Below are positions 30,824 through 50,204 of a stretch of 64,000 nucleotides of DNA, piece by piece (position 1 is the first letter of the stretch; each line of letters opens with the position of its first letter). The translations under genes were made by a program, and so were the position numbers. The DNA is from Caecitellus pseudoparvulus (taxonomy: Eukaryota > Protista > Bigyra: Bicosoecida), in NCBI GenBank assembly GCA_965644315.1, contig CBFFRQ010000057.1:248001-312000 (forward strand), in the 5' to 3' direction. The notes beneath the pieces are model-generated. The model did no database searches. It worked only from the letters and a program-made list of their open reading frames with translations, and had not been told where the DNA came from.

Positions 30824-31914
30824 CGAGCTGCTCAAGCGCGCGCTTTGCAGCCTGGCGTGCTGGCGTGTACGCCCACACAGCCGCTACTGAGGCCATCACT
30901 GCGCCGCCTGCAAGCAGCCACCACACTTCTGGAGGTAGTTGGGACTTATGCACGCTCTCTGCGTCGCCGTCTGCCACGGCAGTCTTGGCTGAGTGGCAGA
31001 CACAGTGGCCGGGTCGGTAAAGACCCATCTCATGTGCGGCGATGCCAGCGCAACGAGGCAGACCCCGCACCAGCATGTCGGTCCACGTGGACGCGAAAAA
31101 ATTCAGAGAAATGCTGGCTGAATCCGACACGGCCTCGTGCCACCAGTCTGCGGGGAATAGCAGGGCATCGCCTGGCCCCATCTCCACGTCCAAAACAAGC
31201 GGCACCTTGGCCAGCAGGGGGTGCCGTGCTGGGTCTGGGAACAGCAGGCTCGCGTCGGCACACACAGTGCCAGAATCGTACTTGTCGTTCACGTACAGCC
31301 AGGGGGCAGCCGACGGGTGTGCCAGGCGCACGCGTTTGCGTCCCTTCAGCACCACCAGTACGTTGTCTTCGTCATCCTGGTGCAGGCCAGTGTGGCTTCC
31401 AGGGGCGCCCAGCCAGGCATAGGGCGTCACGAAGACGTGGCTATCGGGGAAAGGGAGCTCCCCAATGTCTTCCTGTAGAAAGGGAAACATGTCCAGCAGC
31501 TCGCACTGCTTCACATAGCCGGGATGGCCGCTGCCGCTTGCAAGGCTCTTGCAGTACTGAGCCAGAGAAATGCTTCGCTTCCGAGTTGCGCTGGAGGACT
31601 CTTCCAGAGACATGGAGAGGGGCACCTGAACATCAGCACCGGGAAGACTTGCAAGGTGCTCGAAGCTCCATGAGGCTGCTCGCCACCCCCGAGCTAGTCC
31701 TGCGAAGGGAAGAACGGCTAGCGAGTGATGCGCAGGCAGCGTGATGCACAGAATTTCTGAACAAACCTCGAACAAGCAGTGGCTCCCCTCCGCTGCTGAA
31801 GACAGAGGGGGTCATCGCATTACACTGGCTGTCGCTGAAGTCTATGACACGCACGTCCCGCAGCGTGAAGGGCTGTGGAGGGCTTCCATGCCCCTGGACA
31901 CCGTTGCAGTGCAT
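30786..31914 (-). CDS. JmjC (cupin_8) 2-oxoglutarate/Fe(II) oxygenase with C-terminal hydrophobic helix
   Basis: Intron 31700-31766 joins EPLLVRG|LARGWRAASWS. Metal triad from TGLHQD and PADWWHEA, plus KGRKRVRL. Start codon uncertain. Confidence 0.85.
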
Positions 31915-32677
31915 GCACAAGCAATTTCCGCAACTGCCCCTGACTTGCTGGACGGCTGGCTCAAGGCGGCTGGCCCGAGCAAGGAAAAAGCTGGCAGAAC
32001 TGGTAAGGCGAGGTTCGTGTGGAGAGGCGTTCTTGGCGGGGTACACTTTGTGACCAGCAACGTGCTGCGAGGCTGCCACGGCGCAGCTGCCACCCCCTTT
32101 GGCGAGCAGGCACTCCTACTCGCCGCTGACACAATGCAAACAACACCAACAAGGGGCCCAGCATTCCTCCATGTGTAGATCTGCCTATCCATGGTCTGCC
32201 ACCTTTCCTGGCCTTGGGTGCTGTGCGGAATTGGGCGCCACACCCTGCTCTGAGCTTAACCTCTCCTGCGCTTCGGGTGCACGCCCAAGTGTGGGGGTGC
32301 TGTGTCTGGAGGGACTGAGACACTTGTTTTTTCTCTGAGCCTCTTTCCTCAGTTTAAAGAATCCACCTCCTGTGAGTATCAGCGCACGCCTTCCTGCCGT
32401 CGGCACGCGACCTGCTTCAACTGTCCTGGCCTTGAGAGCTCCTCAAGTTGCAACACCCCCCTGTCTTCACCACAGCTTTTAGTGCTGTGTTTTGTGCAGG
32501 GGCTAGCCGCACTGCTCGCGTTCGCCAGTCGCTGCGCCGTGGGAGTTGCTTCCAAGAGCGGCAGCGTTTCGTCCACTGGCCAGCGCAGGCACCCTGGTTG
32601 CCACCCTCGACAGCTCGCGTCCTTTGCACACAAAGGCTGCACGTAGCTGCAGGGGGTTTCCTTCAGTGGTTTTTAGC
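31915..32677. promoter_or_regulatory. Putative bidirectional promoter (JmjC / cadherin)
   Basis: Spacer between divergent genes; contains GCAATTTCCGC at 31921-31931. Confidence 0.4.
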
Positions 32678-35600
32678 ATGGGGCGCTTGTTTAGACGCTG
32701 CATGTTGCTCGCACTTGCTGCGCTGGCGGCATGCTCACCTTTGGCGCAAGCGTGGGAGGCTGGCGTGTGTCCTCCTGGCACAAGCCAGGCTGAGGCTGTC
32801 TCTGAAAACGATGGAGCAGCCACCATTGACTTAACCTTGAACTGGGCAGATATCTCTCGCAACGCCTTCTTCAGACTTGGGAACCTAAGTGACCACAGTT
32901 TCAGGATCAATCCTGCCACAAACACAAGCACGGTCTTGCTTGCAGCCCTGGACTTCGAAACCACTGCTACATACCAAATCCCCTTGCAAGGCTGCGCATT
33001 CACGAATGGCACAGACTGCGTGGCTGTGTGTATGGAGGTTTCAGTGACAGATGTTAACGAGCGGCCGCACTCCATCACGCCGGCCACGACAGTGCATCAG
33101 ATCGCCGAGAACAGCAACGACGACACCGTCGTCATCACGCTGGGTGCGACGGACCCTGATGGGGGGTCTGCTCCGGCCAGCTGGAGGAACTTCGTGTACA
33201 CGCTGGGTGGTGCGGGCTCGGCCCCGTTCAAGATCGTGGGCAACCAGGTGCAGGTGAACACGTCGAGCCTGTTGGACTTCGAGAGTCAGGTGGACTGGGC
33301 CATCACGGTGACGGTGGCGAACAGTTTCTCAACACCGACACCCCACACGGTGCGGTCGTACACGGTGCGGTTGACGGATGTGAACGAGCGGCCGCACTCT
33401 ATCACGCCGGCCACGACAGTGCATCAGATTCCTGAGAACAGCCCCACCAACACAGTCGCCATCACGCTGGGTGCGACGGACCCTGATGGGGGGTCTGCTC
33501 CGGCCAACTGGAGGAACTTCGTGTACACGCTGGGTGGTGCAGGCTCTGGCCCATTTGTGATCGTGGGCAATGAGGTGCGGGTGAACACGCCGGCCTCGTT
33601 GGACTTCGAGAGTCAGCAGGACTGGGCCATCACGGTGACGGTGGCGAACAGCTTCTCGACGCCAACACCCCACACGGTGCGGTCGTACACGGTGCGGTTG
33701 ACGGATGTGAACGAGCGGCCGCACTCTATCACGCCGGCCACGACAGTGCATCAGATTCCTGAGAACAGCAACGACGACACCGTCGTCATCACGCTGGGTG
33801 CGACGGACCCTGATGGGGGGTCTGCTCCGGCCAGCTGGAGGAACTTCGTGTACACGCTGGGTGGTGCGGGCTCGGCCCCGTTCAAGATCGTGGACGATGA
33901 GGTGCAGGTGAACACGTCGAGCCTGTTGGACTTCGAGAGTCAGGTGGACTGGGCCATCACGGTGACGGTGGCGAACAGCTTCTCGACGCCGACACCCCAC
34001 ACGGTGCGGTCGTACACGGTGCGGTTGACGGATGTGAACGAGCGGCCGCACTCTATCACGCCGGCCACGACAGTGCATCAGATCGCCGAGAACAGCAACG
34101 ACGACTCCGTCGTCATTACGCTGGGTGCGACGGACCCTGATGGGGGGTCTGCTCCTGCCAGCTGGAGGAACTTCGTGTACACGCTGGGTGGTGCGGGCTC
34201 GGCCCCGTTCAAGATCGTGGACGATGAGGTGCGGGTGAACACGTCGAGCCTGTTGGACTTCGAGAGTCAGGTGGACTGGGCCATCACGGTGACGGTGGCG
34301 AACAGCTTCTCGACGCCGACACCCCACACGGTGCGGTCGTACACGGTGCGGTTGACGGATGTGAACGAGCGGCCGGTGTTCAGCCCTTCTCCTTCGGCAT
34401 CTTTGGATGTGGATGAGCACCCTGACGTTGGCTTTTCGCTCGGCTCTTTCCCCGCTGTGGACCCTGATGCAACTGGCAGCAGTATCTCGTACTCGCTCTC
34501 AGTCGTCCCCGCACCACTTGCTGGCCGTCTTGTCATCAACTCAACAGGCCATGTGCTCGTAAGTGGTGCGTTGGACTACGAACAATTGACGGCAAGCCAG
34601 CTCGCTGTGTTGACCTTTGACGTCACAGTCACGGCGACAGAGACCTCGGGAGGGTTGTCATCTTCCCACGAGTTCAGCCTTGAAGTTGTTGACGTGAATG
34701 AGGCAGTACTGACCACGAGTCCCTTGACCATTGCTGTGGCTGAGGGGTCTACTGGCTCCCTCGGGCCGGTGCTGTCAACTGGTGACGTTGACCACCAAGG
34801 CCCGAATCGGCCTTTTGCGGACCACGAGTACTCGTACTGGACTGCATCTCCAGAGGACATTTTCGATGTGTCTTCAGGTGGTCAGATCAGCTTGCGGGCT
34901 CCTTTTACGTTGGATTTTGAGCGATTTTCTCAGTACTTTTTGGAGCTACGCGTTGCTGACTTGAACGGTGCTCCTGGCGGCTTCAGCTCAAACTTCACAG
35001 TGCAAGTGAATGTGTCTGACGTGGACGAGCCGCCCCATCAATATGGAGTTGCCTCTGGGCAGCCGGTCATTCCTGAAGATGCCACCATCGGTGCTTTTGT
35101 GTTCCAAGCTGTGGCGGTGGACCCGGAAGGGTTTTCGCCACTTTCCTATTCGATGGTTGGGGGTACCTGTGGCGGTGACCTTACGGTGAACTCGACCGGG
35201 AACGTCACCGTTGCGTCGGCGCTCTCATTCAGCGCCAGCTCTCTGAATTGCACTCTGGTTATCAGAGCGGATGATGCTTCCCTTTTCTCTACACACACAT
35301 ACCAAGTTTCCGTCACAGACGTTGATCAGGCCCCCACGCTACAGCCGGCATCGTATGAAGTTGACGAAAACACTGCTAATGGGACGATCATGCTGCAGAG
35401 CTCGCCCGGGAGTGGAGATGTCTCCCCACAGTATGATGACCCCGACCTGGCTATGCATGGACAAGCCGGCGACACGGCGCTGTACACGCTCACCCAGCCA
35501 CGTCAAGACGTAGACCCGATGGGTGGCTTCTTGTTCAGAGCTGACCCTTTAACTGGTGGTCTCCGTACGAACACAGGCCTCCTGAATTATGAGCAGTTCT

Positions 35601-38600
35601 GGCCGACAGCAGGCTCCGTAAACGTGACCATGCGTGTGTCGGACCGCGCGGGCCTGACGGGAACCACCACAGTCACCATTTACATCAGGGATCAGCAGGA
35701 CGCACCCACTTTCAACCAGAGCACGTACTTATACTTGGTGCAAGAAAACCCCATGCCTGGAACAGTCCTTGGCCAGAACACGACTGCCGAGCCTGTGGAC
35801 GCATCTGATGAAGATGCTGGGCAAACTGGTCTTCTGGAGTTTTCCATCGCTGCAGTGGAGCCTGCCGCTGGCACTTCCTTTTTCGCCATGCACCCTCAGA
35901 CAGGAGAGATCAACGTCACGCTGGCTGGTTCAACTGGCATTGATCTAGAGTCGTATGCCTCATTCAACATCTCAGTTCGTGTCCGGGACCCCGACGGACT
36001 GGAAGACTCAGCCACGGTGCGAGCCTTTGTTGGCGACCTCCCCGAACCCCCTACTTACCCACCATACGCCTTCGTGGTTGACGAGAACTCACCAGTAGGC
36101 ACACCTGTCGGCGTAGCTGCAGCCTCGGACGAGGATGCAGGGACGGTTTTGACGTATGCCATCGTCGACGGGAATGCTGAGGACTTGTTCCGCGTGGATT
36201 CCGCCACTGGCGCCATTTCAGTGAAGAACGACAATGTGACGTCCCCAGCCTTGTTCCTCAACTTTGAGCGCAGGCAAGCGTACAACTTGACCTTGCGAGT
36301 CACGGATAACACCGCGCTTGCAGTGGACACGTACGTTTCCATTTCCGTCATTGACCGCAATGACTACCCTGTCTACACATCAGCTTTCGATTTTTCTGTC
36401 TTGGAACACTCGCCGCTGTCTCAAGACCTGTTTTCTCTGGTTGGCTCTGACGAGGATGACGAAGACGTGCTCTCCTTCGCAATCAGCTCTGGCAACGACG
36501 TGGCTGGCTTGGGGGACGCGTTTCAGGTGGTTGTGGCATCCAACCGAAGCGTCACCGTCCAGCCTGCTCGTGATTTGAACTATGAGGATGGGCAACCGAG
36601 GTGGTATTTCCTGGAAATTCGCATCACGGACGATGATGGCGGGGGCAAGGGCCCTGGTCCTTTTCAGTCCACGGTGTGGGTGAACGTGACGATAGTCAAT
36701 ATTCAAGATCGACCTGTACTGCCTGCAGCCACACTGAGCCTGGCTGAGAACGCACCCCCAGGCAGCTTCGTGGGCCAAGTCCTGGGAACTGATGAAGACA
36801 TTCCCGAGCAGGGCCAGACTCTCTCATACTCGTTCACGAGCCTCTCTGATCCTGCCGGCCTGCAGCGCCTTGCAATCGACCCAGTCACCGCAGTGATTTC
36901 AGTTCTCCCCAGCGTGGATGCGCGCGACGAGAGCCGTTCCGGGCTTAACTTTGAGCTGAACAGCACAATTCGCATGCACGTAGTAGTTTGGGATGATGAC
37001 CCAATCATGCCGCTGAATGCCTCTGCCGTGATCACGGTGGAGCTGACCGACGTTAACGAGCGGCCTATGGTCCTTGTGGTGGACCAGTTCATGGCCGAGC
37101 GCAGCCCCCCTGGGACGCTCGCGGCAGACAACGAGACTGCTGTGTACTCGTTGATGGACCCTTCCGTCGCGCTGGGTGCCAGTCCAGTGACGTTGCAGCA
37201 GATGCTCGCTTTGGGGCGCAACTTGTCGCTGGTAGATCCGGACACCCAGGATCCAGGGCAAAGCTTGAAGGTGTCCGCAGCTCTGCTGTTTTCTGAAGGC
37301 ACGCTGCTGGGGGGCGGGCTGGCAGCCTTGCCGAACACGTCCTTTGCCAACGACGTCAGCTATGAGACTGTGCTGTATGGGAGTCAGGCTTATAGCTCGG
37401 AGCCCTTCTCCCGCCTGGCGGGATTGTGGGGCTCCCCTTCGTGCTTTAGTGGCTTGGGCACCGCCTGTGGAAACAACACCGCTGCGAGGGGACTCCTGAC
37501 CTCCAGCTTGGAGCCTCAGGTCGTGTTTAATCTGTCGGGCACAAATGAGGACGGGTTTGGCATCTCCCTGTTCCGTGGTGAGCTCGACTTTGAGGCGCGG
37601 AACCTGTACCAGTTCGCCGTGTTCGTCGAGGATGAAGGCGGGGCCTTGGGGTCTGGCGTGCAGAACACGACCTTCATCTACAACTTGCACGTGGTGAACA
37701 TCAACGAACCAGCCACACTGCAGGTGCATGGCACCCCCAGTGCCAGCGAAAACAGCCAAGTGGGGGTGTGTCTGAACGACTTCTCCTTGCTTCCAGTCGA
37801 CCCCGATGACCAGCTGCTGATTGGAGAGATTCGTTCCGCGGATCTCGGTGCAGAGCTCTTCTTTACCTTGAAGGAAGCCAACTCCACTCTGCGCGCGGAT
37901 GGTTCGCGAGACTCCATCGAGCTGTGTGTCTCCAGACTGGGGCTGCCCACAGGCCAGCAGACGGTGGAGGTGCGCATGTTTGACCCCAGTGATGGCTCAA
38001 AAAGCAGCGTTTGGCGCCTCATCGTGATCACGGTCAACGATGTCAACGATCGGCCTGAGCTTCGACCCCCATACGTCGCTGCCATAGATGAACAGTCTCC
38101 AGTGGGCACACCAGTCCTGCATGTCATTGCAGATGACAATGATGTGTACCAGAACCTCAACTTTGTGGTTGAAGGGGACTTGGTGGAGTACTTTTCATTC
38201 GAACCGGTCGTGACGCCCCTCAGGTCGTTGAACTGCACGAACGCCATGCAACTTAGCCAGCCCTACAACTGCACGCCACCGGAGGTGGTGGCCTACTACA
38301 CTGCTGTCAACGGGGGGCCATTCCTCAACCGCTCTGCTAACTTAGTGGTGGCCTTGGATGCCTTGGACTACGAAGCCATGCAGGCAGCGCCCTTTTTCGG
38401 GCAGTACTCCGTCGCGTTCCGCGTAACAGACGTGCCCTTCATCACCAGGGACGGCATTTATTTCGAAGACGAAGAGGAGCCCGAGCTCAGTCGACAAGGG
38501 CTCATCACAGTGTCTCTGCAGGATATCTTCGATCCCCCCTCCATATCCTCGGTGACTGCCTTCACCCCCTTCGGCTTGACCACCGCAGGAGGGGAATCCG

Positions 38601-41600
38601 TCACCATCACGGGAAACAACTTTGGCCCTGCCCGGCTGGCCCACCCAGCACTTGCCGCCAGTACCCACAACGGGCCAGTGGTCGCTGCCCAGTACACCTC
38701 TGAGGCTCTGCAGACGTCATTCAATACGTCGCGCTGCGAGGTGGTCGTGGCCTACACCAGCATTCAGTGCTTTTCACAGCCAGGCTTTGGCGCAGGCTAC
38801 GCCTGGCGTGTGTTTCTGGGAGGTGGCACGCCCTACCGTGCAGGGGTTATTGTACAAGTGTCAGAGTACTCACTGAACACCACCCGCTACGCTGCCCCCA
38901 ATGTGGTGCGTTTCCTGGGCCCTGGCCATGACCAAGCGGACAGCTCAGGTGGGCAGCTTGTCATCGTGGAGGGCTCCCAGTTCGGAACCGTTGCAGCAAA
39001 CCGGGTGGACCGCGTCACGTATGGCCCACTCGGCGTGGAGTATGAGGCCAAGAACTGCCGCGTTGTCGTGGACCACAGCGTCATCCACTGCACGTCCGCT
39101 GCTGGAGTGGGCGCAGGCTTGCGCTGGGTCGTGAACATTGCCGGTCTCACTTCCCAGACTCCCACGACAAATTACGCCCCGCCCACCATTTCCTCGGTTC
39201 AAATGCCCAATGGCAGCCTTCCCAGCACCGAGGGTGGGGCTGTCGTGCGCATTATCGGCGAAAATTTCGGGGCTGTGGACGAGTTCCCTCCAGCTGTTGA
39301 TTCGGTCAGGTACGGTTACCCTGACCACCGCACTGTTGTTGTGACGGGAACAGGGAATGGTACCCGCCGGCTCCTTGGCACTGAAGAGTGGGAGGGGGGC
39401 GAGCCAGGCTGGGATCGAGAGCTTTTTTCATCCATTTCAACCAGTACAGCTGCAACCAGCTCGACCCTGTCCGCCACGGATTCGCGACAAGTGCCTCTCC
39501 TGGCATCCCCTTATGCCGTGCAACCATCGACGGTGCTTAGGTCTGATGCGTTTACGGCCACGGACTGTCTCGTGGTGGTGAACCACACTGTTATCGAGTG
39601 CACCCTCGCGGCTGGCGCTGGCGCCGACTTGCATGTTCAGGTCAGCATCCGCGGACAGCCCTCGGCTGTCTCCAACGTCACCGTGCGTTACGCGCCCCCG
39701 CGCATTGACAGCATCTTCTTGCCGACGGAAGATGGCGATGAGCTCCTGCGTGGCTCCACCCGCGGGGGTTCACGCTTGACGCTGCAGGGCGAAAACTTCG
39801 GGCGCCCCCAAGACAACCCTCGGGTGTTCTTTGGTGTCAAGCATTTCGACCCCGTTACTGGGCTGCTTCATAGTCAGCCTGTTCGCCGGCAGCTCCCCTC
39901 TAGTTCTGTGAGCCCTTCCCTGCACTCGGAACTGAGGTTCGACTTCCCGGGAGGACACGGTGACTCCGTCGATGTTTGGCTGAAGGTCAAGGGGCAAGTT
40001 TCGCAGCCGATTACCACCTTTGGCTTTGAACCCCCAAAAATCAACAGCCTGGAGCGACTTGGTGGTGCTCTGGCCGATCTGCCCATTCGGCTGAAGCTGA
40101 TCGGGCAACATTTCGGCGCCTGCTGTTTCCAACTCCGCCAGCGCTTGGAGGCCGGTGCTGCACCTGCTGCCATTGCCGCGCTGCAGGATACGTGTGCTTG
40201 CTTGCCTGGTGAAGTGGAGAGCATCCAACTGGAGCACTGGCCAGCTGAAGGCGGCGCTGTCCAAATCGTGCCCTGCAACATTACCTCGTATGCCGAGACG
40301 GAGGTTGAGTGCAACACCACCGTGATCAGCGGGAACTTGACGATCACCGTAGGTGGCCAAGTCAGCGACCCTTATGTTTACAGATTCAGCGACTTGCTCA
40401 CTGTGCCAATCATAGAGCAAGTCTCAGTGTACAGTGATGGAGCATACAGGGACGTGGAGACGACGGCTGCCCCAAGGCCAACGTCAGGGCTGGATGTGCA
40501 AGGAGCGCGTGTTCCCGTTCAAATCAAGGGCCGCAACTTCGGGCTGTCGCCAGGCATCGTGCATTTCATGTACTATCACCCAGCTGATCCGGCTGGCTCG
40601 GAGCCCCCTCACTTTGTTGTAGCTCAACCGTACCTCGCCTCGGGCAACTGGTGGACTGACACGATTGTCCGGGTGCTGCTCCCTGAAGGTCAGGGGCGGC
40701 CAGTGATAAAGGTGTTCTTCCCAGACGCCCAAAACACGTTTGCGCTGTACGACAAGTTTCAGTACACGGCACCCAACATCACGTCTGTGGCGTACGCAAG
40801 TGGGCCCTCCAACGGGTACCTGTGGTTGACTCACAGATACGCTTCGAGGCACCCCATCACTGGGGTTGCCGTTGATGCGCCTCTTCTTACGATTCGAGGC
40901 ACGAATCTCGGCAAGCCACTGGAGCTGTCCCCTTCTGACGCCCTGCTGCCTGGCGGCGAGTCTGCAGGCGTGCAGTACCAGGGAGGGCAGTTGCTTGACA
41001 TGGCACCATCGCCGACCGGCGAAGCTGCCAGCGTGTCCAACGTCAGGCTGGAGTCTGTGATCACAGTGGGAGGTAAACAATGCCTCGTGAAACTGTGGAC
41101 TCATTCCATCATCCAGTGTGCAGCGCCTCCAGGCGTCGGGGTAGACTTGCCTATCACTCTGTGGATGCACAGGCGCTTCACAGAGTCAGCATCTGACTTC
41201 ACACAGCGCATGTTCACCGTGAACGTGCCTGGTGCGTACTCCTACGATCCGCCTTCTGACTTGAAGCTGTCCTGCAGCTCGAACCCTGCCACTGTGGACA
41301 CCTGCTCGACACATGGGCCTACCCAGGGAGGCATGCCCCTCTTTGTGCACGGCAGGTCGTTTGGCCCGCCGGGGAACCCTTCAACACTCATCAGCATCGA
41401 TGGCACTGCGCCCCAAGTTGTGCAGCGCCTTTCACACAACCTTATTCGATTCGAGACGCCACCGGGCGAGGGGCGCGACTTGGCCATGATGGTGTCGGTG
41501 GAAGGGCAGTCTGCTGCGGCGGACATCTTTCACTATGACCCTCCTGTCATTGAGTGCATTTCCAACGAAACACACTGTGTTCCTCCAGCCAGCACCACGT

Positions 41601-44600
41601 TGCTGAATGCGATGGACACCCTGATCACCATCAACGGCCGCAACTTTGGCTTGGACGGAACAAAGGCAGGCGCTCAGCAGGATGACATCTTTGTGAACGG
41701 ACTCCGGTGCGCACCGAGCGGGCAAGAGAGTGTCTTTGTCCGACCAACACAACTTCAGTGTCGGGTACGAGACCTGACCGTTGGCAACAAGTCCCTTACC
41801 ATTCAAGTCGCAGGGCAGCAGGTGTCATACTCTCAGCAGGAACAGGTCATCCGAGCCGTGTGCCCGACTGGATTCTTTGGCTCCATCCCCCAAGTGGATC
41901 AGTGCACAGCATGTCCCCAGTGCCGAAGTGAGGCTTGTGAAGGGCTGCAGGAGCGGGCCAGCATCTGCTCAGGCGGGCTGGACCCACCTGTGGCTGCTCC
42001 AGGTTACTGGCGCTTGGACCTGCAGGATTCCAGCCTTGACCTGGCCTTGTTCGACATCAACGTCACGGCTGATGGCAGCTCTGCGTCAAGGTGGCAGTTT
42101 ACGCGGTGCGAGCCGGCTGAAGCTTGCTTGGAAGGCAACACATGTGCCTACGGCTACACCCAAGCAGCTTGCTCTGTCTGCCTCCCGCAAAAGTACCAGC
42201 GCAACCTCATCAGCGGCGTGTGTGAGCCGTGCCCAGACAACGCCGGCCTGTACACGTTGGGGATCATCCTCCTGGCAGTGGTTCTCGGCGCCATTCTGTA
42301 CAAGCTGTACAAGAAAGGCCCATCTGTCGCAGCGCTCGGCATTGCAGTGGATTACCTGCAGATTCTGTCCGTGTTTGGCAGCTTGAACTTGCAGTGGCCC
42401 GCGTCTGTGCAGTTTGTCTTCCAAATGGCGTCAGCCTCTGCTGCTTCAGTTGAGACGGCCTCTCCAGAGTGCTCCGTTGAGCTGGGATATATTCGCAAAT
42501 GGTTCTTGTTTATGGGGTTGCCAGCCGGCACCATTGCCATCTTCCTTGTCCTGCACTGCCTGATCGTCTTCGCGAAGAGCACGTTCCTGAAGAAGAAGGG
42601 CAGCGACCGCCACAACCTGTACCAGCATGTGCCTGGCATGATCGGTTTTGTGTTCATGATGCTGTCCTTCATGTACATTTCCCTCACCGCGAAGGCCTTC
42701 GAAGCATTGGAGTGCAAGGAGGTTGGCGGCGTGCTGGTGCTGGCCGTGGACAGCGAGGTGCTGTGCAAGTCCGCTTCTTATGCAAACCTGCGCTCGTGGG
42801 CCTTTGCCGCCGTGTTTGCGTACGGACTTGGCATTCCAGCTCTCTTTGCCCTCATCATCTTTCGAACTGCCGCGCGGATGAAGGCTGACCAGGCGCTGCG
42901 CATTCAGAACTTGTCAGGGAGCAGGGAGACTAACCCATTTTATGACTTTCAGAAGCGATACAAGCGACTATACTTCAAGTTCAAGCCCACGTACTACTAC
43001 TGGATCCTCGTCATTTTGGCTCGCAAGTTCATGATTGTCGTCATTGCTGCTCAGATGAAAGCACGCCCGATGATGGCTGCAACCACCACGGTGGTTGTTC
43101 TCTTTGCCGCGTGCATCGCCCAGCTGACCAACATGCCATATCGACAGCACGAGACGCAGAGCAAAGAAGAAGCGGTCAAGACTGGCGCCTTGGGCTCTGA
43201 CATTCCTCCCGCACTCCTGGCGCTGATCCGCCAAAAGCAGCTGTCAGCAGCGACGGAACGTGCAGCAGCAGGGCGTCACCCTGCAGGCGCAGCTCCTGGT
43301 TCCAAAGCCTCCAAGCTCCTTGGCGCTGGCACTGGTGACCTGGCTGCCATAAAGCTCCCGGCTGCCGGTGGCGCTTTGCCGCGAGCAGGCAAGCGGTCCT
43401 CCAAAGGAGTGGCAGTGCACGGGCGGGGAGTGGACCTGAAGCACCTCGCGTCCGATGGCTCTGTTCTGTGGGCGAACGACCCACGCCTCATGCAGCAGGC
43501 CGTCGGAGGCAGGGCTGGTGCTGGCTCAGGCACTGATCTGAGCGGGGGCACGCCGCCTTCCCGACCCACTGCTGGCTCTGTTTGGTTCCGCGCTTCTGTT
43601 GTGGGGGGCATGCGGAAGCCCATGCGGGCCAGCGTGGCTCCCGGTGCCTTCGGTCGTCGAGTGCCTCGGAAGGGCTCCAAGGCTGGTGTGTCACAAACCC
43701 CTACAGGGAAGGCCACTTCACCTGCCGCAGCAGCATCATGCTGTGGGGCGTGCACCCGGTGTGGCGCGGTTCGGAAGCCGCAGGAGGAGGCGGCGACCTT
43801 GGGGCGGGGCGGCTCTCTGCGCGATATCAGACGGCGGTCAGCACACGTACCCAAACATGCCACGACCACCGACCCAAAGCGTGGCTGCTGCATGCGGGGT
43901 CTGTGTGCGATGTGGAGCTGGGTCATGTCATTTGGCACTGCCAGCAATGCCAAGGATGGCTTGCAGCTTCGGGAGGAGTCTCGCAAGGGGGGCAAGGTGA
44001 AAGTCAAGGTCAAGTACCTCTTCAACTACAACCTCCTGGAGGCAACATTCCTCGTCTGTGCTGTGTTCGTGCTGCTGAGTGGCGTAATGTTCCGAACAGC
44101 AGACTCCAGTGGCGAGCTGGACAACCCAGCTGAGCGGGTGGCCATGGAAGTCGGAGTCATGGTCATAATCGTGGGCTCGACTGTCATCTGCCTGACGACT
44201 GTGCTTGCTGAGCTAGCACTTGGTATGCAGTACACGTTATGGGCGGGCCAGCTGCGCCGCAAGCGGGAGAAGGAGTACAAGCGGCAGAAGCGCCTGGAGA
44301 AGAGCCTGCTGGGCAAAGCCAAAGTGCCTGCATGTGCCGTTTGGTGCACGACGTGGTGTGGATGCTGTCCCACGCGGATGAAGCAACATCCTTTGTGCAG
44401 GCCTTGTTTCCGGCTGCCATTCGACCCCCGCGTTACAGCAGCTGCAGTGCAGGAGAACCCCCTGTCTGTGGCCCACGGCAAGCAGGCAGCTGGAGCCGCT
44501 GGAGACGTTGCTCGCAGGCGCCGCAACAGCATCAAGATCATGCTGGGCATGAAAGACAGCCAAGCGCTACCCAGCACGTCTGTTGAAGTGGAGCGCACAC

Positions 44601-47600
44601 GGGCCTCTCGAGGCAGCATCACCTCCCGGAGTGCGCTCAAGTTTGCCGCCAAGAAAACGGGAAACAGTATGCGAGACCTCATGTCAGCAGCCAGCACTGC
44701 CCTGCGCAAGGCAAGTTTCGGGTCAGTGAGCAGCCGCAGGTCGGATGCTACCCACACCGGGCGCTTCAGCGGAGAGGACGGTGATTCTGACCGTAGCAAT
44801 GTGTCCTCTGATGAGGAAGACGAAGTGGAGCGACAGATTCGCGAGGCAGAGGAGGCCAGGGCCGGGAAGACGAGCAAGTTCGGCTCAAGGTACGAAGCCG
44901 GGTCCGACACGGCCGCCTCCTCCCGCAGCGTCGCCTCTGAGGCATCATCTGCTAGCAGCCAGCGCAGTCACAGCGGCAGTGCGTACTCAGGCCCCCGCGA
45001 TGGGGCAGGAGTCGTGAGGCAAGTTGTGCCTGCGACACCAGAAGAGTTCCAGCACATGAAGTCTGCCAAGGTGCTGAGTGTAACCGAGGCGCAGATTCGG
45101 CGCCAAGCCATCATGCAGCGCCTGCGCGCAGTGTCAGGGAAGGTCGCGACGAACCGCATGCGCGATGCTTTGTCGCCGGTGGTGGGCAAGCGAGCACACC
45201 ATCCCGAGCTGCACATGCTCACCGGCCGGTCTACGGCCGGTGCAGAGGCCGCAGCCCTGGGCTCCGCTGGTCAAGATACAGCTGCGCTGAGCTCTCAAGG
45301 AGGCGGAGACAGCAAGGCGGGGCCGGGGCAGGCGGCGCACGCCAGTACAGGTGGGCCGACGCGGCGCAACGCCCGGCGCATCACTACTGACGTGACCTAC
45401 TCGGCAGAGGCAGCAGCGGAGCTAGGTCTCGTGCGCGGGCTGCAGACGACGGACCCCATCCGTCTTGCACAGATCGTGCGCCTGCAGGAGGCGCAGTCTG
45501 ACCCCCTCATCCACAAGTTGGCAGTTGGGCACTCAGCAGCTCGCAACACAGATGTGACGCCCGGCGCTGCCGCCGCCCTGCAAACTGCTAGCAAGTACCA
45601 GAATGTGTCACGGTACATTGTGTCCATCCATTTGGATAAAGTGTGGCAGCTGCGCGGAGTTTCTGAAGGCACACCATTGCGGGTCGTCCTGAAGCTGGAT
45701 AGCCAGGCGGAGAAGGTGGCCTTCACGTACCGGCCCAATGTGGACATGCGCATCCGGGAGATGCGCCTGCCTGTGTTCAACCCCGACACGGACTCTGTCA
45801 TCGGCACGCTTTACGCGGCTCAGAACTTCGTACCTGGCGCAGTCGCACACAAGGTGGCGGAGGATGTCGTGGGGCACTTCACATTCAATGTTAGCGAGCT
45901 GCCCAACCCTCTCGACAACCCTGAGCGCATTCAGATGCAATTCGGGCTGATGGCCTTCGACGGCGCCATTGCGGGGTACATCTCCTTCCTCATGAAGGCG
46001 CAGCATCGTGGTGCCGTGGTGGACGACTGGACAGATATGCGCATGGGTGCACGACACTATGGCATGGTGCCGGAGCCATCAGAGGAGGCGCGCGCTGCCG
46101 CTCGCCGGGCGGGCCTGCGGGCCTCCCGGGCAGGTGGCAAGTCGGGAGCTGCCATCGCGGCCAGCGATGCAGCCGCCCACGCACACTTGGGGCGCTATGT
46201 GGTGCAAGATGACGGCGATGTTGCCTTTGCAGTGGGGCTGGATGAAGATGGTGCGGACAAGCGTCTAAGCTGGCTGCCCGGCTCAAGTGGCGATGGCGCC
46301 GGAGGAAAGGACGATTTGGATGGGCCAGTGCTGCGTACAAAGGGTCGCAGCAGCTCTGTGCAGCGGCTGGCGAGCAACCCCATGCTTGCTGCCCGAGCAT
46401 CCACTGCTTCTGTGGCACCGCCCAGTGCGATTGTGCCGCCAGCGCGATCTGCCGTGGACAGCTCAACAGCCACCATGCTCGCAGCTGCAAGTGCCGGGTC
46501 CATGGGCAACACAACCAAGGGTCGCGCGGCCAATACCGTCATCGCGACGTCCCACCGCAGCCTGCTGGCTGCGCGCCAACGCCACAGCATGCTAGAAGGT
46601 GAGAAAGGCGGGGGGGGCAGCCGGCGTGCCTCGCGGCGTCGCCCCAGTCTCGCAAAGGAGGCCAACCAAGCCAGCCTCAGAGGCATGCTCGGACTGTATG
46701 CCAAGGCAGAAGTCGAGGAGTTTGGCACGGAGGATGGCGGGACTGACCTGCAGCCCTTTGAAGAGCGTGGGCGGGCCGGATCAGCGTTCTCCGTGTCGAG
46801 CAATCCCTTACAGGGAGGGCGAAAGTCGCAGTCTAGCGCCCCTGCAAACCCTGCACCCAATAGGGCATCAGACACTTTGCCGCAACCCGCCACGGTCCTG
46901 GAGGCTGCCTCACGTAGTGCGCCACAAGGGAAGCAGGCTCCGCGGCATCCCGAGTTGGCCCCCAGCCTTCCAGCGGACATGCCCAGCAGCGGTGGGCTGA
47001 ATCCCCTTGCCATGCTGAATGTTTTTGCGCCAAGCCGCCGGGACAGCGCCTCGGCACGCAGGCAGTTCGGCCTTGGCCAACGTGCCAGCGCCAAGGCAGC
47101 TGGCACCAGCGCCCACGACGGACGCAGTAGGACACGCCGGACACAGGGGACTGCAAAGGGAAGTGCAGTTGCTGCAGGTGGCCCAGGGTACACAAGTGGC
47201 GCGGCCCTACACCGCATGCGAGGGGAAACGGCCGAGCAGGCCGAGCAGGCTGTTGGGATGGATGTTGCGCTCGCCTCTGCGTTAGCCAGTGGCGTGGATG
47301 AGTCGGGCGGGCTGTTTGGCTCCAGCCAGGTGGATGTGTCAAGTGCCACAAAGCCTCCGCGGGTGCGAGGAGGAAGCGTGCACTGCAACCCACTGCAAGG
47401 GAAGCGCCCGGGAGGGGCTCAAGGTGCTCGGTCTACCACACGAGCTGGCCGCGGGCTTGCCGCCAAACGGGATGCCGCTTCTACCCGCTCCCCAGAAGAA
47501 GGAGGAGCACCCTCAGACGCCGTTGATGAAGCGAGCGTGGGGGTGGAGCTCGATCGCCTCGGGCGCAGCAGTCTAAATCCCCTGCGAGCGGCGGCATTGG

Positions 47601-47692
47601 GAGGCGGAGTCTCCTCTGCATCCCCACGCAGCACGAGCAGGTCCACCTTGAGGCGCGCTCGACGCAGTGCCACTCCATCCAGTACAACTTAG
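32678..47692 (+). CDS. Giant cadherin receptor: signal peptide, ~16 cadherin repeats, ~8 IPT/TIG domains, Cys-rich region, 9 TM helices, cytoplasmic C2-like domain (~5000 aa)
   Basis: Single uninterrupted ORF starting MGRLFRRCMLLALAALAACSPLAQA. Repeated xEN...ATDPD...LDFE...DVNE Ca2+-binding motifs; GGxxVxIxGxNFG IPT starts; CPTGFFG/CEPAEAC Cys-rich segment; nine hydrophobic helices at about 42245-44220. Confidence 0.92.
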   Translation: MGRLFRRCMLLALAALAACSPLAQAWEAGVCPPGTSQAEAVSENDGAATIDLTLNWADISRNAFFRLGNLSDHSFRINPATNTSTVLLAALDFETTATYQIPLQGCAFTNGTDCVAVCMEVSVTDVNERPHSITPATTVHQIAENSNDDTVVITLGATDPDGGSAPASWRNFVYTLGGAGSAPFKIVGNQVQVNTSSLLDFESQVDWAITVTVANSFSTPTPHTVRSYTVRLTDVNERPHSITPATTVHQIPENSPTNTVAITLGATDPDGGSAPANWRNFVYTLGGAGSGPFVIVGNEVRVNTPASLDFESQQDWAITVTVANSFSTPTPHTVRSYTVRLTDVNERPHSITPATTVHQIPENSNDDTVVITLGATDPDGGSAPASWRNFVYTLGGAGSAPFKIVDDEVQVNTSSLLDFESQVDWAITVTVANSFSTPTPHTVRSYTVRLTDVNERPHSITPATTVHQIAENSNDDSVVITLGATDPDGGSAPASWRNFVYTLGGAGSAPFKIVDDEVRVNTSSLLDFESQVDWAITVTVANSFSTPTPHTVRSYTVRLTDVNERPVFSPSPSASLDVDEHPDVGFSLGSFPAVDPDATGSSISYSLSVVPAPLAGRLVINSTGHVLVSGALDYEQLTASQLAVLTFDVTVTATETSGGLSSSHEFSLEVVDVNEAVLTTSPLTIAVAEGSTGSLGPVLSTGDVDHQGPNRPFADHEYSYWTASPEDIFDVSSGGQISLRAPFTLDFERFSQYFLELRVADLNGAPGGFSSNFTVQVNVSDVDEPPHQYGVASGQPVIPEDATIGAFVFQAVAVDPEGFSPLSYSMVGGTCGGDLTVNSTGNVTVASALSFSASSLNCTLVIRADDASLFSTHTYQVSVTDVDQAPTLQPASYEVDENTANGTIMLQSSPGSGDVSPQYDDPDLAMHGQAGDTALYTLTQPRQDVDPMGGFLFRADPLTGGLRTNTGLLNYEQFWPTAGSVNVTMRVSDRAGLTGTTTVTIYIRDQQDAPTFNQSTYLYLVQENPMPGTVLGQNTTAEPVDASDEDAGQTGLLEFSIAAVEPAAGTSFFAMHPQTGEINVTLAGSTGIDLESYASFNISVRVRDPDGLEDSATVRAFVGDLPEPPTYPPYAFVVDENSPVGTPVGVAAASDEDAGTVLTYAIVDGNAEDLFRVDSATGAISVKNDNVTSPALFLNFERRQAYNLTLRVTDNTALAVDTYVSISVIDRNDYPVYTSAFDFSVLEHSPLSQDLFSLVGSDEDDEDVLSFAISSGNDVAGLGDAFQVVVASNRSVTVQPARDLNYEDGQPRWYFLEIRITDDDGGGKGPGPFQSTVWVNVTIVNIQDRPVLPAATLSLAENAPPGSFVGQVLGTDEDIPEQGQTLSYSFTSLSDPAGLQRLAIDPVTAVISVLPSVDARDESRSGLNFELNSTIRMHVVVWDDDPIMPLNASAVITVELTDVNERPMVLVVDQFMAERSPPGTLAADNETAVYSLMDPSVALGASPVTLQQMLALGRNLSLVDPDTQDPGQSLKVSAALLFSEGTLLGGGLAALPNTSFANDVSYETVLYGSQAYSSEPFSRLAGLWGSPSCFSGLGTACGNNTAARGLLTSSLEPQVVFNLSGTNEDGFGISLFRGELDFEARNLYQFAVFVEDEGGALGSGVQNTTFIYNLHVVNINEPATLQVHGTPSASENSQVGVCLNDFSLLPVDPDDQLLIGEIRSADLGAELFFTLKEANSTLRADGSRDSIELCVSRLGLPTGQQTVEVRMFDPSDGSKSSVWRLIVITVNDVNDRPELRPPYVAAIDEQSPVGTPVLHVIADDNDVYQNLNFVVEGDLVEYFSFEPVVTPLRSLNCTNAMQLSQPYNCTPPEVVAYYTAVNGGPFLNRSANLVVALDALDYEAMQAAPFFGQYSVAFRVTDVPFITRDGIYFEDEEEPELSRQGLITVSLQDIFDPPSISSVTAFTPFGLTTAGGESVTITGNNFGPARLAHPALAASTHNGPVVAAQYTSEALQTSFNTSRCEVVVAYTSIQCFSQPGFGAGYAWRVFLGGGTPYRAGVIVQVSEYSLNTTRYAAPNVVRFLGPGHDQADSSGGQLVIVEGSQFGTVAANRVDRVTYGPLGVEYEAKNCRVVVDHSVIHCTSAAGVGAGLRWVVNIAGLTSQTPTTNYAPPTISSVQMPNGSLPSTEGGAVVRIIGENFGAVDEFPPAVDSVRYGYPDHRTVVVTGTGNGTRRLLGTEEWEGGEPGWDRELFSSISTSTAATSSTLSATDSRQVPLLASPYAVQPSTVLRSDAFTATDCLVVVNHTVIECTLAAGAGADLHVQVSIRGQPSAVSNVTVRYAPPRIDSIFLPTEDGDELLRGSTRGGSRLTLQGENFGRPQDNPRVFFGVKHFDPVTGLLHSQPVRRQLPSSSVSPSLHSELRFDFPGGHGDSVDVWLKVKGQVSQPITTFGFEPPKINSLERLGGALADLPIRLKLIGQHFGACCFQLRQRLEAGAAPAAIAALQDTCACLPGEVESIQLEHWPAEGGAVQIVPCNITSYAETEVECNTTVISGNLTITVGGQVSDPYVYRFSDLLTVPIIEQVSVYSDGAYRDVETTAAPRPTSGLDVQGARVPVQIKGRNFGLSPGIVHFMYYHPADPAGSEPPHFVVAQPYLASGNWWTDTIVRVLLPEGQGRPVIKVFFPDAQNTFALYDKFQYTAPNITSVAYASGPSNGYLWLTHRYASRHPITGVAVDAPLLTIRGTNLGKPLELSPSDALLPGGESAGVQYQGGQLLDMAPSPTGEAASVSNVRLESVITVGGKQCLVKLWTHSIIQCAAPPGVGVDLPITLWMHRRFTESASDFTQRMFTVNVPGAYSYDPPSDLKLSCSSNPATVDTCSTHGPTQGGMPLFVHGRSFGPPGNPSTLISIDGTAPQVVQRLSHNLIRFETPPGEGRDLAMMVSVEGQSAAADIFHYDPPVIECISNETHCVPPASTTLLNAMDTLITINGRNFGLDGTKAGAQQDDIFVNGLRCAPSGQESVFVRPTQLQCRVRDLTVGNKSLTIQVAGQQVSYSQQEQVIRAVCPTGFFGSIPQVDQCTACPQCRSEACEGLQERASICSGGLDPPVAAPGYWRLDLQDSSLDLALFDINVTADGSSASRWQFTRCEPAEACLEGNTCAYGYTQAACSVCLPQKYQRNLISGVCEPCPDNAGLYTLGIILLAVVLGAILYKLYKKGPSVAALGIAVDYLQILSVFGSLNLQWPASVQFVFQMASASAASVETASPECSVELGYIRKWFLFMGLPAGTIAIFLVLHCLIVFAKSTFLKKKGSDRHNLYQHVPGMIGFVFMMLSFMYISLTAKAFEALECKEVGGVLVLAVDSEVLCKSASYANLRSWAFAAVFAYGLGIPALFALIIFRTAARMKADQALRIQNLSGSRETNPFYDFQKRYKRLYFKFKPTYYYWILVILARKFMIVVIAAQMKARPMMAATTTVVVLFAACIAQLTNMPYRQHETQSKEEAVKTGALGSDIPPALLALIRQKQLSAATERAAAGRHPAGAAPGSKASKLLGAGTGDLAAIKLPAAGGALPRAGKRSSKGVAVHGRGVDLKHLASDGSVLWANDPRLMQQAVGGRAGAGSGTDLSGGTPPSRPTAGSVWFRASVVGGMRKPMRASVAPGAFGRRVPRKGSKAGVSQTPTGKATSPAAAASCCGACTRCGAVRKPQEEAATLGRGGSLRDIRRRSAHVPKHATTTDPKRGCCMRGLCAMWSWVMSFGTASNAKDGLQLREESRKGGKVKVKVKYLFNYNLLEATFLVCAVFVLLSGVMFRTADSSGELDNPAERVAMEVGVMVIIVGSTVICLTTVLAELALGMQYTLWAGQLRRKREKEYKRQKRLEKSLLGKAKVPACAVWCTTWCGCCPTRMKQHPLCRPCFRLPFDPRVTAAAVQENPLSVAHGKQAAGAAGDVARRRRNSIKIMLGMKDSQALPSTSVEVERTRASRGSITSRSALKFAAKKTGNSMRDLMSAASTALRKASFGSVSSRRSDATHTGRFSGEDGDSDRSNVSSDEEDEVERQIREAEEARAGKTSKFGSRYEAGSDTAASSRSVASEASSASSQRSHSGSAYSGPRDGAGVVRQVVPATPEEFQHMKSAKVLSVTEAQIRRQAIMQRLRAVSGKVATNRMRDALSPVVGKRAHHPELHMLTGRSTAGAEAAALGSAGQDTAALSSQGGGDSKAGPGQAAHASTGGPTRRNARRITTDVTYSAEAAAELGLVRGLQTTDPIRLAQIVRLQEAQSDPLIHKLAVGHSAARNTDVTPGAAAALQTASKYQNVSRYIVSIHLDKVWQLRGVSEGTPLRVVLKLDSQAEKVAFTYRPNVDMRIREMRLPVFNPDTDSVIGTLYAAQNFVPGAVAHKVAEDVVGHFTFNVSELPNPLDNPERIQMQFGLMAFDGAIAGYISFLMKAQHRGAVVDDWTDMRMGARHYGMVPEPSEEARAAARRAGLRASRAGGKSGAAIAASDAAAHAHLGRYVVQDDGDVAFAVGLDEDGADKRLSWLPGSSGDGAGGKDDLDGPVLRTKGRSSSVQRLASNPMLAARASTASVAPPSAIVPPARSAVDSSTATMLAAASAGSMGNTTKGRAANTVIATSHRSLLAARQRHSMLEGEKGGGGSRRASRRRPSLAKEANQASLRGMLGLYAKAEVEEFGTEDGGTDLQPFEERGRAGSAFSVSSNPLQGGRKSQSSAPANPAPNRASDTLPQPATVLEAASRSAPQGKQAPRHPELAPSLPADMPSSGGLNPLAMLNVFAPSRRDSASARRQFGLGQRASAKAAGTSAHDGRSRTRRTQGTAKGSAVAAGGPGYTSGAALHRMRGETAEQAEQAVGMDVALASALASGVDESGGLFGSSQVDVSSATKPPRVRGGSVHCNPLQGKRPGGAQGARSTTRAGRGLAAKRDAASTRSPEEGGAPSDAVDEASVGVELDRLGRSSLNPLRAAALGGGVSSASPRSTSRSTLRRARRSATPSSTT
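33047..34374 (+). repeat. Coding tandem repeat: 4 x 327 bp (109-aa cadherin domain)
   Basis: Units start at 33047, 33374, 33701 and 34028, with a partial fifth at 34355 (acrgatgtkaacgagcggccg). Near-identical in DNA; unit 2 is the most diverged. Confidence 0.97.
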
Positions 47693-47800: not shown

Positions 47801-50204
47801 CTACACAGGCACCTCATCCACCTTCAAGTCAGGAACCGCGTCCCCGGACAGATTCTTGCCAGAGGGAACTGGGCCTCCAATGGCGACGGACTGGCGCATG
47901 ATGTGGACACACAACATGCCACCAACAAATGCCGTCCAACCAGGGGTTTGTTCGAGGTGCTGGGAAACAGCTGTTGGTAACGTCTTGGCCTGCTGAGCTG
48001 CTGCCACAGCTGCTGCTGCGGCCATCGCATGCCCAACAAAGCCAACCGTGTGGGAGGGGCTTCCCGCATACATGTTGCCTAGGTCGCTGGGCAAGCACTG
48101 CGCCTTGGCCATGCGAACAAGCCAGGATGGCAGCCCCCCCTGCACAAGAACAGCGTCTTTCCCCTCGTCCGAGCCTTGCATGACAACAGCCTCCAGTGCT
48201 GAGAAGACTGTGCGATGCAAAAGGGAGGCCCAAGGAAACGCCTCGACACACTGCAACAGAACAGTGCAGGACACCCCCATGCTCTCCCCGGTGCCCTGCC
48301 ACTGGCACAGCAGGAGCCCCGCGACAATTTCAGCGACTGCCGCAGCGCACTGCCCCAAGCGGGGAAGGTGGTGTGCCTCACCAACCACCCTGCGGCCGCT
48401 GATCAACGACACCGGAGCTGCCACTGCCGACTGCCCAGCCGGCGCAGGTGGCAGCGTGGAAGCAGCATGTTCGGCCTCCGTTGCAGCGGCTGTCAGAAAC
48501 TCGGTCATGAGCGGCAGCAGGTCCAGCAACATGTCCACAAGGGGTGGGGGCGGTAAAGCTGCCACCTGGGAGGGCGCACCTGACCCGAGCACCCCACCTA
48601 CAGTCCTGGCCGCCAGGCGGACCAAGCCCGACAAGGCTTGCAAGATAGCTGTGCCATGCCTCCATGGAGCGGCAACGGAGGCGGCATCCAGGCCAACGAG
48701 CCCCAGGGCCGTAGTGACGGTGCCTGGGGACAGCTGAGGGGCTTTCAGAGCAGACACGCGACCTGCACACACCTCTGAGAGCGTGGCCTGCGGCGCCTCC
48801 GCTCCTTGCGACGAGTGGCCTAGAATGCAGCGTACCAGCGCACGTGCCAGGGCCTGCACAGGCCCGTCCGACCACTGCAAATGTCGGAGTAAGTGCCCAG
48901 CAACAGTGGGGATGCACCCGCCACTGGCGACCTCCACCCCAGGCGCGTAGAACCCGGCATCCAGGACAGACGCCGCGTGCGCTCTCACGCCAACGGGCAC
49001 GAGGCCAGCGAAGGGCAGCGCTGTCTCCTTCTCCGTCGTGCTGCCCAGCGGCGTTGGCCCGGCGGAGCCCGCGTCACCTCCGAAATGGCGGTGGGGCACA
49101 ACCACTGCTTGCTGCAGCAGCTCGTCCACCAGCACTGCCGCAGTGTCTGCTGAACGGCGGGCAGCTTCTTGCACCGCCTGCTCTACTGCTGCCTGCGGCA
49201 ATCTGCTGGCCGTCGCTTTGGCAATGCAAGCCATGGACGTAAATCCCAGCTCGGCACAATGTGCCTGCACCGCTCCCAGGTGGGCGACTGCCGAGGAGCC
49301 GGGCCCGGCACCTCCTAAGCAAGTAGTCACAAAGTGCACCAGGGGGAGTGTGCCTGCCTTGCGCACGTCAGCTTCTGTCAGCCCCAGCCCTGCCACGGGG
49401 AGCGATGCTGCCGGCCAGGGCAGGGAGGTCAAGAGCTGCAGCAGACGGGTCACAGCTTGAACATCAGCGTGCAACAGGATGCGCCGCACGAGAGGAATGG
49501 GTGCTGTCGTCACAGCTGCAATCGTTTGCAGCGTGTGGCTCTTGCAGAGGGCCTCGAGCACCTGAGCTGCGTAGGAAACGCGGTACTCCTGAGCTGGAGC
49601 CCCGGGTGGCAGCACGCAGAATAACCGGTGAACGTGCCGCATGGGGGGGACCTTCCCTGTCTCCAAAGCCTCTTGTGCTTCTTCGGGTGATGTGTATCCG
49701 TGTCCCGGCCCCGGAGGCAAAGTTGCGCTGCCCTGCAGCAAGGTCCGTGTCACAGCAGGGTTCCCGCATTTGAACAGCTCACACGCGATGTACGGAAAGC
49801 GGTAGCTCAACTGCTCGCTCTCCTGCATATCCCAAGGCTGGTCCACGATGAGCTGCACCAGTGCTGCTACCTGTTCATCTTGAGCCAAGCTGGGCGGCGG
49901 GCACGTGCGTGGTGGGGGGCCATTGCCCAGCGATCAGCTGGAGCACATCGCACGCACAAGTCAACCAGCGCTTGGTTGTATCCACGAAGGTCTTGGACGA
50001 CATCCTCTTGTGTTAAAATATCATGAAGCGTGAACCCCTCCTGCTCCATGGCCGTCTCAACCCCTCTGCACAAGAGCATTGGCCCAGTGTGGCTGCACAA
50101 GTGCCATGCGGAAATCGCAGGCCTGCCTCGCACGATTTGGTGAAGAGGCTGTCCGCGCCCATCTCGAAGGCCCCGCCCCCTGCCCCAAAGTCGAAAAAGT
50201 CCAT
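47801..50204 (-). CDS. PPP6R: SAPS-domain PP6/Sit4 phosphatase regulatory subunit
   Basis: Two 5' introns (50066-50133 and about 49890-49957) give FTLHDILTQEDVVQDLRGYNQALVDFLAQ...LVQLIV...YRFPYIACELF. Later motifs RLG, FPWASLLH and GFVGH. Confidence 0.85.

Follow-up and report, generated by a model that had tools for sequence, protein, structure and literature searches.

In the name nonagonal cadherin, the adjective refers to nine passes through the membrane. The name was reportedly introduced by Fletcher, van West and Gachon in 2016 (Gene 593:64-75). Passages of PMC8164589 and PMC11603286 cite the nonagonal cadherins as a stramenopile family named in that year, an oomycete-specific 'tri-modular' cadherin subfamily is mentioned in PMC7409359, and the first oomycete cadherins came from the Pythium ultimum genome paper. 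In the literature searched, no experimental characterization of nine-pass cadherins was found. Here we describe a gene for a nine-pass cadherin in the bicosoecid Caecitellus pseudoparvulus, located at positions 32678 to 47692 of a 64,000-nucleotide stretch of contig CBFFRQ010000057.1 (hereafter the window, whose numbering is used throughout). The gene was singled out in an earlier reading of the bare sequence (the original prediction), which placed nine-pass cadherins in both oomycetes and choanoflagellates; this needs correction, in that the literature consulted assigns the family to stramenopiles and not to choanoflagellates.

Two further groups of nine-pass proteins invite comparison. Fission-yeast Pkd2, which we take to be a member of PF06011, starts with a signal peptide and an extracellular domain, continues with nine predicted transmembrane (TM) helices and ends in a disordered tail. 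When reconstituted, Pkd2 passes Ca2+ under membrane stretch (PMC9727806). In the CRMPs (cysteine repeat modular proteins) of Toxoplasma and Plasmodium, Cys-rich modules of the ephrin-receptor-like or EGF-like type precede nine TM helices. An N-out, C-in topology has been shown experimentally for TgCRMPa, and CRMPA and CRMPB form a heterodimer through their TM regions that is required for rhoptry discharge, a process of regulated exocytosis.

The Caecitellus protein is most likely a nonagonal cadherin, an assignment made from its cadherin (EC) repeats and nine passes, with the likeness to published members being one of description. Specifically, EC repeats with Ca2+-linker motifs and nine passes were both found and, as in nonagonal cadherins, the repeats are set on a nine-pass region in a non-animal host. 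Possible points of difference from the published nonagonal cadherins are a cytoplasmic C2 fold, which is confined to one clade of four paralogues and metagenomic orthologs, a TM7-TM8 loop of ~300 amino acids (aa), a run of nine IPT/TIG units and a recent four-copy EC array. The traits that distinguish the locus are the clade-specific C2, the long TM7-TM8 loop and the recent expansion of the EC array. The suggestion that the full architecture was undescribed has to be withdrawn, as the combination of cadherins with a nine-pass layout belongs to a named family and the genome contains many paralogues of the gene; only the clade-specific cytoplasmic C2 tail may be undescribed. With respect to function, our preferred reading, to which we assign a probability of roughly 70%, is that this nonagonal-type cadherin serves as a receptor for contact or tension, with the distal cadherins acting through the nine-helix core on an output carried by the C2 tail.

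Gene structure and conservation

The open reading frame (ORF) occupies 32546..47692 of the + strand, with the first ATG at 32678, and encodes 5,004 aa without a stop. At a G+C content of ~60%, stops are calculated to occur at ~0.03 per random codon, and a run of 5,004 stop-free codons therefore excludes a chance frame. An ortholog, P0001 (4,437 aa; metagenome contig L041, sample ERZ27316688), matches the Caecitellus protein in a single colinear alignment that covers aa 469-5001 at 46% identity. This colinearity supports the 15-kb single exon of the original prediction. The low-complexity tail is also alignable to P0001, across ~990 columns, and is therefore taken to be coding rather than a mere extension of the open frame.

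Conservation relative to P0001 is graded by domain. Identity is highest in the membrane core (75% for TM1-7 and 76% for TM8-9), followed by a conserved island in the tail at aa 4101-4180 (62%), the Cys-rich module (60%), the C2 module (59%) and the IPT/TIG region (54%), and it falls to 44% in the TM7-TM8 loop, 41% in the cadherin repeats and 31% in the distal tail; the flanks of the tail island lie at 31-41%. This colinear, domain-graded conservation marks the locus as a genuine gene that selection has maintained. It is hardly credible that the locus is an artifact of assembly or annotation, or a decaying copy of a family member. In favor of such an explanation, several members of the family have an identical or near-identical twin on another contig, but the frame runs for 5,004 codons without a stop and has, in another organism, a colinear ortholog in which the conservation is graded by domain and a neighboring gene is kept.

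The same gradient bears on whether the protein might be a passive adhesin or cell-coat protein, with a stalk that only sticks cells to surfaces or to one another (for example, in starved cells) and a core that provides anchorage and trafficking but does not signal. In the stramenopile bacterivore Cafeteria burkhardae, cadherin and IPT genes are upregulated in starved stationary cells, not in feeding ones, and they rise together with other adhesion domains; the many Caecitellus paralogues with differing ectodomains would likewise suit a passive role. One helix would suffice as an anchor, however, and identities of 75% in the core and 59% in the C2 module, as compared to 41% in the cadherins, are unexpected for a mere anchor. 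Because the membrane core and C2 module are better conserved than the cadherins, we regard a purely passive function as quite improbable.

Ectodomain

The start codon and signal peptide (aa 1-26; 32678..32755, + strand, as are all features of the gene given below) are followed by a very long extracellular region. The signal peptide, placed at the first ATG, is evident as a hydrophobic peak at aa 8-26 in the Kyte-Doolittle profile, as had been proposed. For domain assignment the whole protein was scanned against Pfam at E<=0.01 as three overlapping pieces, and the Cys-rich, membrane and tail pieces were rescanned at E<=1. Pfam Cadherin (PF00028) was matched at 2.4e-97 in 10 stretches, and the bacterial-type Cadherin_4 model gave a far weaker match that overlapped with PF00028.

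The first 1,954 residues were split at recurring DxN[DE]xP-type linkers, which yielded 16 segments corresponding to 16 EC repeats at aa 27-1954 (32756..38539). When queried individually, 13 of these segments matched PF00028 (E<=1e-3). A count by a hidden Markov model iterated from one repeat had converged on only 6 repeats and was replaced by linker cutting with per-segment Pfam searches. In the alignment of the repeats (A1), the Glu of the xEx motif and the Asp of the DxD motif are invariant, and most repeats also show motifs of the LDFE and DxNDxP types. By these matches and motifs, the repeats are assigned as cadherin repeats of the eukaryotic kind. The estimate of ~16 cadherin repeats with Ca2+-linker motifs is therefore upheld, and the He_PIG/dystroglycan-type identity that had been raised as a possible refutation is not what the PF00028 score and the Ca2+ motifs indicate.

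Repeats EC2-EC5 form a near-identical tandem array (33045..34375) of 327 nt × 4.1 copies with 93% matches, as measured with Tandem Repeats Finder. Upstream of the called start of P0001, contig L041 contains an EC1-like match and then directly the later repeats, which suggests a single unit at the EC2-5 position in the ortholog locus and, by extension, that the four-copy array was expanded specifically in the Caecitellus genome. The length of the stalk thus seems to have changed recently, by way of this array.

The cadherins give way to nine IPT/TIG-like units at aa 1953-3060 (38534..41857). TIG (PF01833) was matched at 1.5e-42 in the scan of protein pieces, a G..FG motif occurs nine times across the region, and seven of the nine segments match PF01833 (six of them above the gathering score), so that the predicted run of IPT/TIG domains is confirmed. 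Taken together, the 16 cadherin and nine IPT/TIG units would form a calcium-stiffened rod of roughly 100 nm by our estimate.

Between this putative rod and the membrane lies a Cys-rich juxtamembrane module at aa 3059-3188 (41852..42241). Its matches to DUF7630 (9.6e-4) and Ephrin_rec_like (0.017) are weak and both below cut-off; its Cys columns are invariant in a 67-sequence alignment of relatives (A3). A Cys-rich module had been anticipated at this place in the original prediction. No mention of DUF7630 was found in the literature search. The arrangement resembles, by layout alone, that of apicomplexan and ciliate CRMPs, in which a Cys-rich module likewise directly precedes nine TM helices in an N-out/C-in protein with a large, modular, adhesion-type ectodomain; CRMPs, however, carry Kringle, MAR or lectin domains where the Caecitellus protein carries cadherins. 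Flamingo/CELSR and classical cadherins share PF00028-type repeats with canonical Ca2+ motifs but have seven helices and one helix, respectively, as opposed to nine. Besides Cadherin and TIG, the Pfam scans at the thresholds given above listed only weak TRP, DUF7630 and Ephrin_rec_like matches, and nothing of the GAIN/GPS, class-B 7TM or cadherin-cytoplasmic type.

Nine-helix membrane core

Beyond the signal peptide, the Kyte-Doolittle profile contains exactly nine hydrophobic segments. The first seven (aa 3189-3207, 3217-3235, 3281-3299, 3318-3336, 3376-3394, 3442-3460 and 3465-3483) make up TM1-TM7 (aa 3189-3483; 42242..43126), a region in which the block-mean predicted local distance difference test score (pLDDT) of the AlphaFold model is mostly 80-98. 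The remaining two (aa 3786-3804 and 3825-3843) constitute TM8-TM9 (aa 3786-3843; 44033..44206) and correspond to model helices at residues 645-672 and 678-735. The intervening TM7-TM8 loop (43127..44032) is disordered (pLDDT <50) and contains 7 Cys; at ~300 residues it contrasts with the 55-80 residues usual in relatives. The core model, which covers aa 3140-3875 and was built on alignment A3, has nine long membrane-length helices, with 340 residues at pLDDT >=90. Hydropathy and model thus agree on the nine helices originally proposed, rather than on far fewer.

With respect to topology, the flanks of the loops assigned to the cytoplasm contain 3, 5, 9, 6 and 7 Lys and Arg residues, as compared to 2, 2, 4, 2 and 2 for those assigned to the outside, and the Cys residues with full or almost full conservation in the family alignment (A3) are located in the outside loops. 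The distribution of charges and cysteines is as expected for an N-out, C-in orientation, which would render the ~300-residue loop and the whole tail cytoplasmic. Per 100 aa, the ectodomain has 1.49 N-glycosylation sequons and the tail 0.34.

The core has a consistent, sub-threshold relationship to the fungal Pkd2/Flc family. The PF06011 'TRP' model scored 20.9 bits (1.8e-4) on the whole-protein pieces, as compared to a gathering cut-off of 28.5 bits, and 11.8 bits on the core alone. Among the 67 aligned cores, 13 match PF06011 at E<=1e-3 (best 9.1e-8) and 37 match DUF7630 at the same threshold, and short relatives score 18-21 bits against PF06011 on the same profile span, 165-346. We therefore describe the core as a putative sub-threshold relative of PF06011. 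It shares with Pkd2/Flc proteins the order of signal peptide, ectodomain, nine TM helices and disordered cytoplasmic tail, and its weak sequence matches fall on the same span of PF06011. Unlike Pkd2/Flc proteins, it falls below the Pfam cut-off, lacks an ML-like TRP_N domain and has an ectodomain of >3,000 aa made of cadherin and IPT units plus the Cys-rich module.

In a shape search of the ESM Atlas, 400-420 residues of the core were aligned at a root-mean-square deviation of 3.1-3.8 and a TM score of ~0.5, and the matched clusters carry Ephrin_rec_like, DUF7630 or PF06011. In these clusters, LRR, Chlam_PMP, TIR or START domains accompany the core; the organisms represented are green algae, haptophytes, ciliates, cnidarians and sponges. 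Against solved structures, Foldseek with the core model returned nothing at E<=1e-3; VIA-align gave a best Z of 7.8 over ~110 residues, on generic helical bundles at background level; and a PDB sequence search with profile A3 produced nothing meaningful. As no solved structure resembles the core, its mechanism cannot be borrowed from one. Assignments of the core as a G-protein-coupled receptor, as a true TRP/polycystin channel, or as a pentameric channel or known transporter fold were each considered and set aside, with Foldseek and VIA-align giving no significant fold match to the first and no solved-structure match to the others.

The resemblance to Pkd2 nonetheless raises the prospect that the protein is a tethered mechanosensitive channel, with a Pkd2-like Ca2+ pore in the core that is opened by tension on the stalk and a C2 tail that responds. 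The sub-threshold PF06011 matches, which recur at profile positions 165-346 here and in relatives, would be explained by such a channel, as would the identical Pkd2 layout, the passage of Ca2+ through reconstituted Pkd2 upon membrane stretch, and a stalk that is long and probably stiff. On the other hand, the PF06011 homology stays below the Pfam threshold, no solved channel resembles the core model, the core is not tied to cadherins but also follows ectodomains of LRR, lectin-type and other kinds and is combined with TIR or START domains, the CRMPs are described as a signaling and exocytosis complex rather than as a channel, and the C2 module has no recognizable conserved aspartate cluster. 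On balance we consider a channel unlikely. A fuller version, in which one polypeptide would serve as tether, force-gated Ca2+ channel and effector, with the C2 tail converting channel opening into local remodeling of the membrane, strikes us as rather unlikely.

Cytoplasmic tail and C2 module

The tail comprises 1,160 residues after TM9, in keeping with the >1100 aa anticipated. Just past TM9, a Cys cluster (44327..44407) that is conserved in P0001 may be a site of palmitoylation; the tail contains 8 Cys in all. This cluster and the 7 Cys of the TM7-TM8 loop, both on the predicted cytoplasmic side, could alternatively bind metal. The conserved island at aa 4101-4180 (44978..45217) is probably a basic helix. 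The polypeptide ends in a distal Ala/Ser/Gly/Arg-rich tail, defined by composition, that together with the stop codon occupies 46088..47692.

Between the island and the distal tail, AlphaFold modeling and Foldseek place a C2-fold beta-sandwich at aa 4290-4470 (45545..46087), with strands at ~aa 4313-4443. The model (m23546037e0b1), built on an eight-sequence alignment (A2), has eight strands and a mean pLDDT of 75.5, with most core blocks at 82-94. Foldseek against the PDB gave 131 matches at E<=1e-3, the closest of which are C2 domains: the best is C2A of plant E-Syt1 (7as6; 1.5e-7, TM score 0.77 by target), and further matches include otoferlin, Munc13, intersectin and Trichomonas C2 proteins. 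Independently of Foldseek, a language-model feature search of the Atlas returned C2 clusters as 24 of its 30 matches. A C2 fold for this predicted module is thus supported, and the C2-like module of the original prediction is sustained at the level of fold.

Family relationships

The TM1-7 core has at least 63 matches in the 30.6-Mb genome of Caecitellus itself, about two dozen of which are full-length and lie within ORFs of 3,700-8,657 aa. The C2 module, by comparison, is present in four genome copies only, the gene studied here and those on contigs C69, C32 and C37. A maximum-likelihood tree of the core was computed from 28 of 30 genome loci and 15 external proteins, with loci represented by high-scoring segment pairs of <230 aa left out. 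The four C2-tail paralogues and the metagenomic proteins P0001 and P0004 form one clade in this tree (support 97/88), within which P0001 is the partner of the studied gene and P0004 that of the C37 copy. This pairing indicates that the C2-tail paralogues predate the split between these organisms.

Outside the genome, word-based protein searches were nearly blind to the family, returning 3 matches with the TM region and 3 with profile A3. When 1.84 billion representatives were searched exhaustively with phmmer, by contrast, 2,813 proteins related to the core emerged at E<=1e-3, 201 of them at E<=1e-30. EC-like repeats were present in 63 of 159 fetched sequences (mostly relatives of the TM core), chiefly in the giant ones. 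The core appears to be part of a very large pan-eukaryotic family whose ectodomains are swapped freely and which would take in fungal Pkd2/Flc-type proteins and, judged by architecture, the apicomplexan CRMPs. In P0117, a short core relative of 771 aa, the core is followed by a WW domain (9.9e-10) on the cytoplasmic side; given also the TIR and START domains seen in the Atlas, the exchange of cytoplasmic outputs seems to be as free as that of ectodomains.

Some observations on close copies are also recorded here. The identical or near-identical pairs L005 (G000:C20)/L006 (G000:C68), L010/L012, L016/L018 and L025/L026, the members of which lie on different contigs or at different positions, point to recent segmental duplication or to redundancy in the assembly. 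Protein P0002, from an environmental metagenome (L042; ENA ERZ23499096, scaffold ZHEN20-1_SAMN07748060_METAG-scaffold_92), is identical to the C69 paralogue across the 180-aa C2 module, and P0003 differs from the C37 paralogue by one residue over the same module. Public metagenomes thus seem to include this organism or one very close to it.

Proposed mechanism

The anatomy of the protein, a long stalk on a polytopic membrane unit with an intracellular C2-like module, stands as originally proposed, and for the adhesion or prey-sensing receptor built upon it, a role in adhesion or contact is the most reasonable choice that we can infer. Whereas domain anatomy, topology signals, C2 fold, family relations and conservation come from the analysis itself, the ligand, the signaling step and the cellular role of the receptor are likewise what we infer in the following scheme. 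The fast-evolving distal cadherins would bind a surface, and contact or pull would begin the signal. The Cys-rich module, which joins the rod to the nine-helix core, would relay this event across the membrane. Cytoplasmic output would then be carried by the 300-residue loop and the 1,160-residue tail, with its Cys cluster, tail island and C2 module. Finally, the C2-bearing tail, probably lipid-anchored, would act on the inner leaflet and lead to local attachment, exocytosis or uptake.

Several observations weigh against this receptor scheme. The rise of cadherin and IPT genes in starved C. burkhardae, if transferable to Caecitellus, disfavors simple prey capture. The match of the core to PF06011 is below the Pfam cut-off (20.9 versus 28.5 bits), and neither Foldseek nor VIA-align provided a solved structural relative for it. 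As for the C2 module, aa 4290-4470 gave no Pfam match even at E<=1, PF00168 included, and no PDB sequence match with profile A2. In the A2 alignment, moreover, D83 is the only invariant Asp located within a loop, and several Arg are invariant; a canonical Ca2+-binding aspartate cluster is not evident, and calcium dependence of the putative C2 module is doubtful.

Neighboring genes

Upstream of the cadherin gene, positions 26192-30823 (+) encode a GH47 mannosidase with a PA domain (Pfam, GH47 2.9e-92); at 1,543 aa, this protein is unusually long for the EDEM or ER-mannosidase type. It is followed by a gene for a JmjC/cupin protein at 30786-31775 (-). Downstream, a 695-aa ORF at 47801-49888 (-) has no Pfam match. 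Its counterpart beside P0001 (L041:16429-18423 (-)) is 36% identical over ~690 aa and has the same position and orientation, by which the ORF is assigned as a syntenic uncharacterized gene. Farther downstream, a 3,071-aa ORF at 52305-61520 (-) has as its sole Pfam match a canonical C2 domain (PF00168, 1.8e-13). Among the neighbors of the locus there is no head-to-head cadherin partner and no CRMP-like partner gene. By comparison, CRMPA and CRMPB work together as a heterodimer where rhoptries are secreted.

Implications

The nine-helix core examined here is a very widespread eukaryotic receptor chassis, with 2,813 representative relatives and no solved structural relative. Just two functionally studied relatives surfaced, a stretch-activated, Ca2+-permeable protein of yeast and the Toxoplasma CRMP complex that triggers rhoptry discharge. 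If the rather unlikely combination of tether, channel and effector in one polypeptide were true, the Caecitellus protein would parallel, in a protist, the combination of tip link and channel in the hair cells of animals, and a mechanism would suggest itself for all receptors composed of a Cys-rich module plus nine TM helices, the CRMPs included. With respect to the preferred reading as a contact or tension receptor, the clade with the C2 tail would offer a concrete cytoplasmic output, and with it a compact model for how contact at the cell surface may be turned into a response of the cell.

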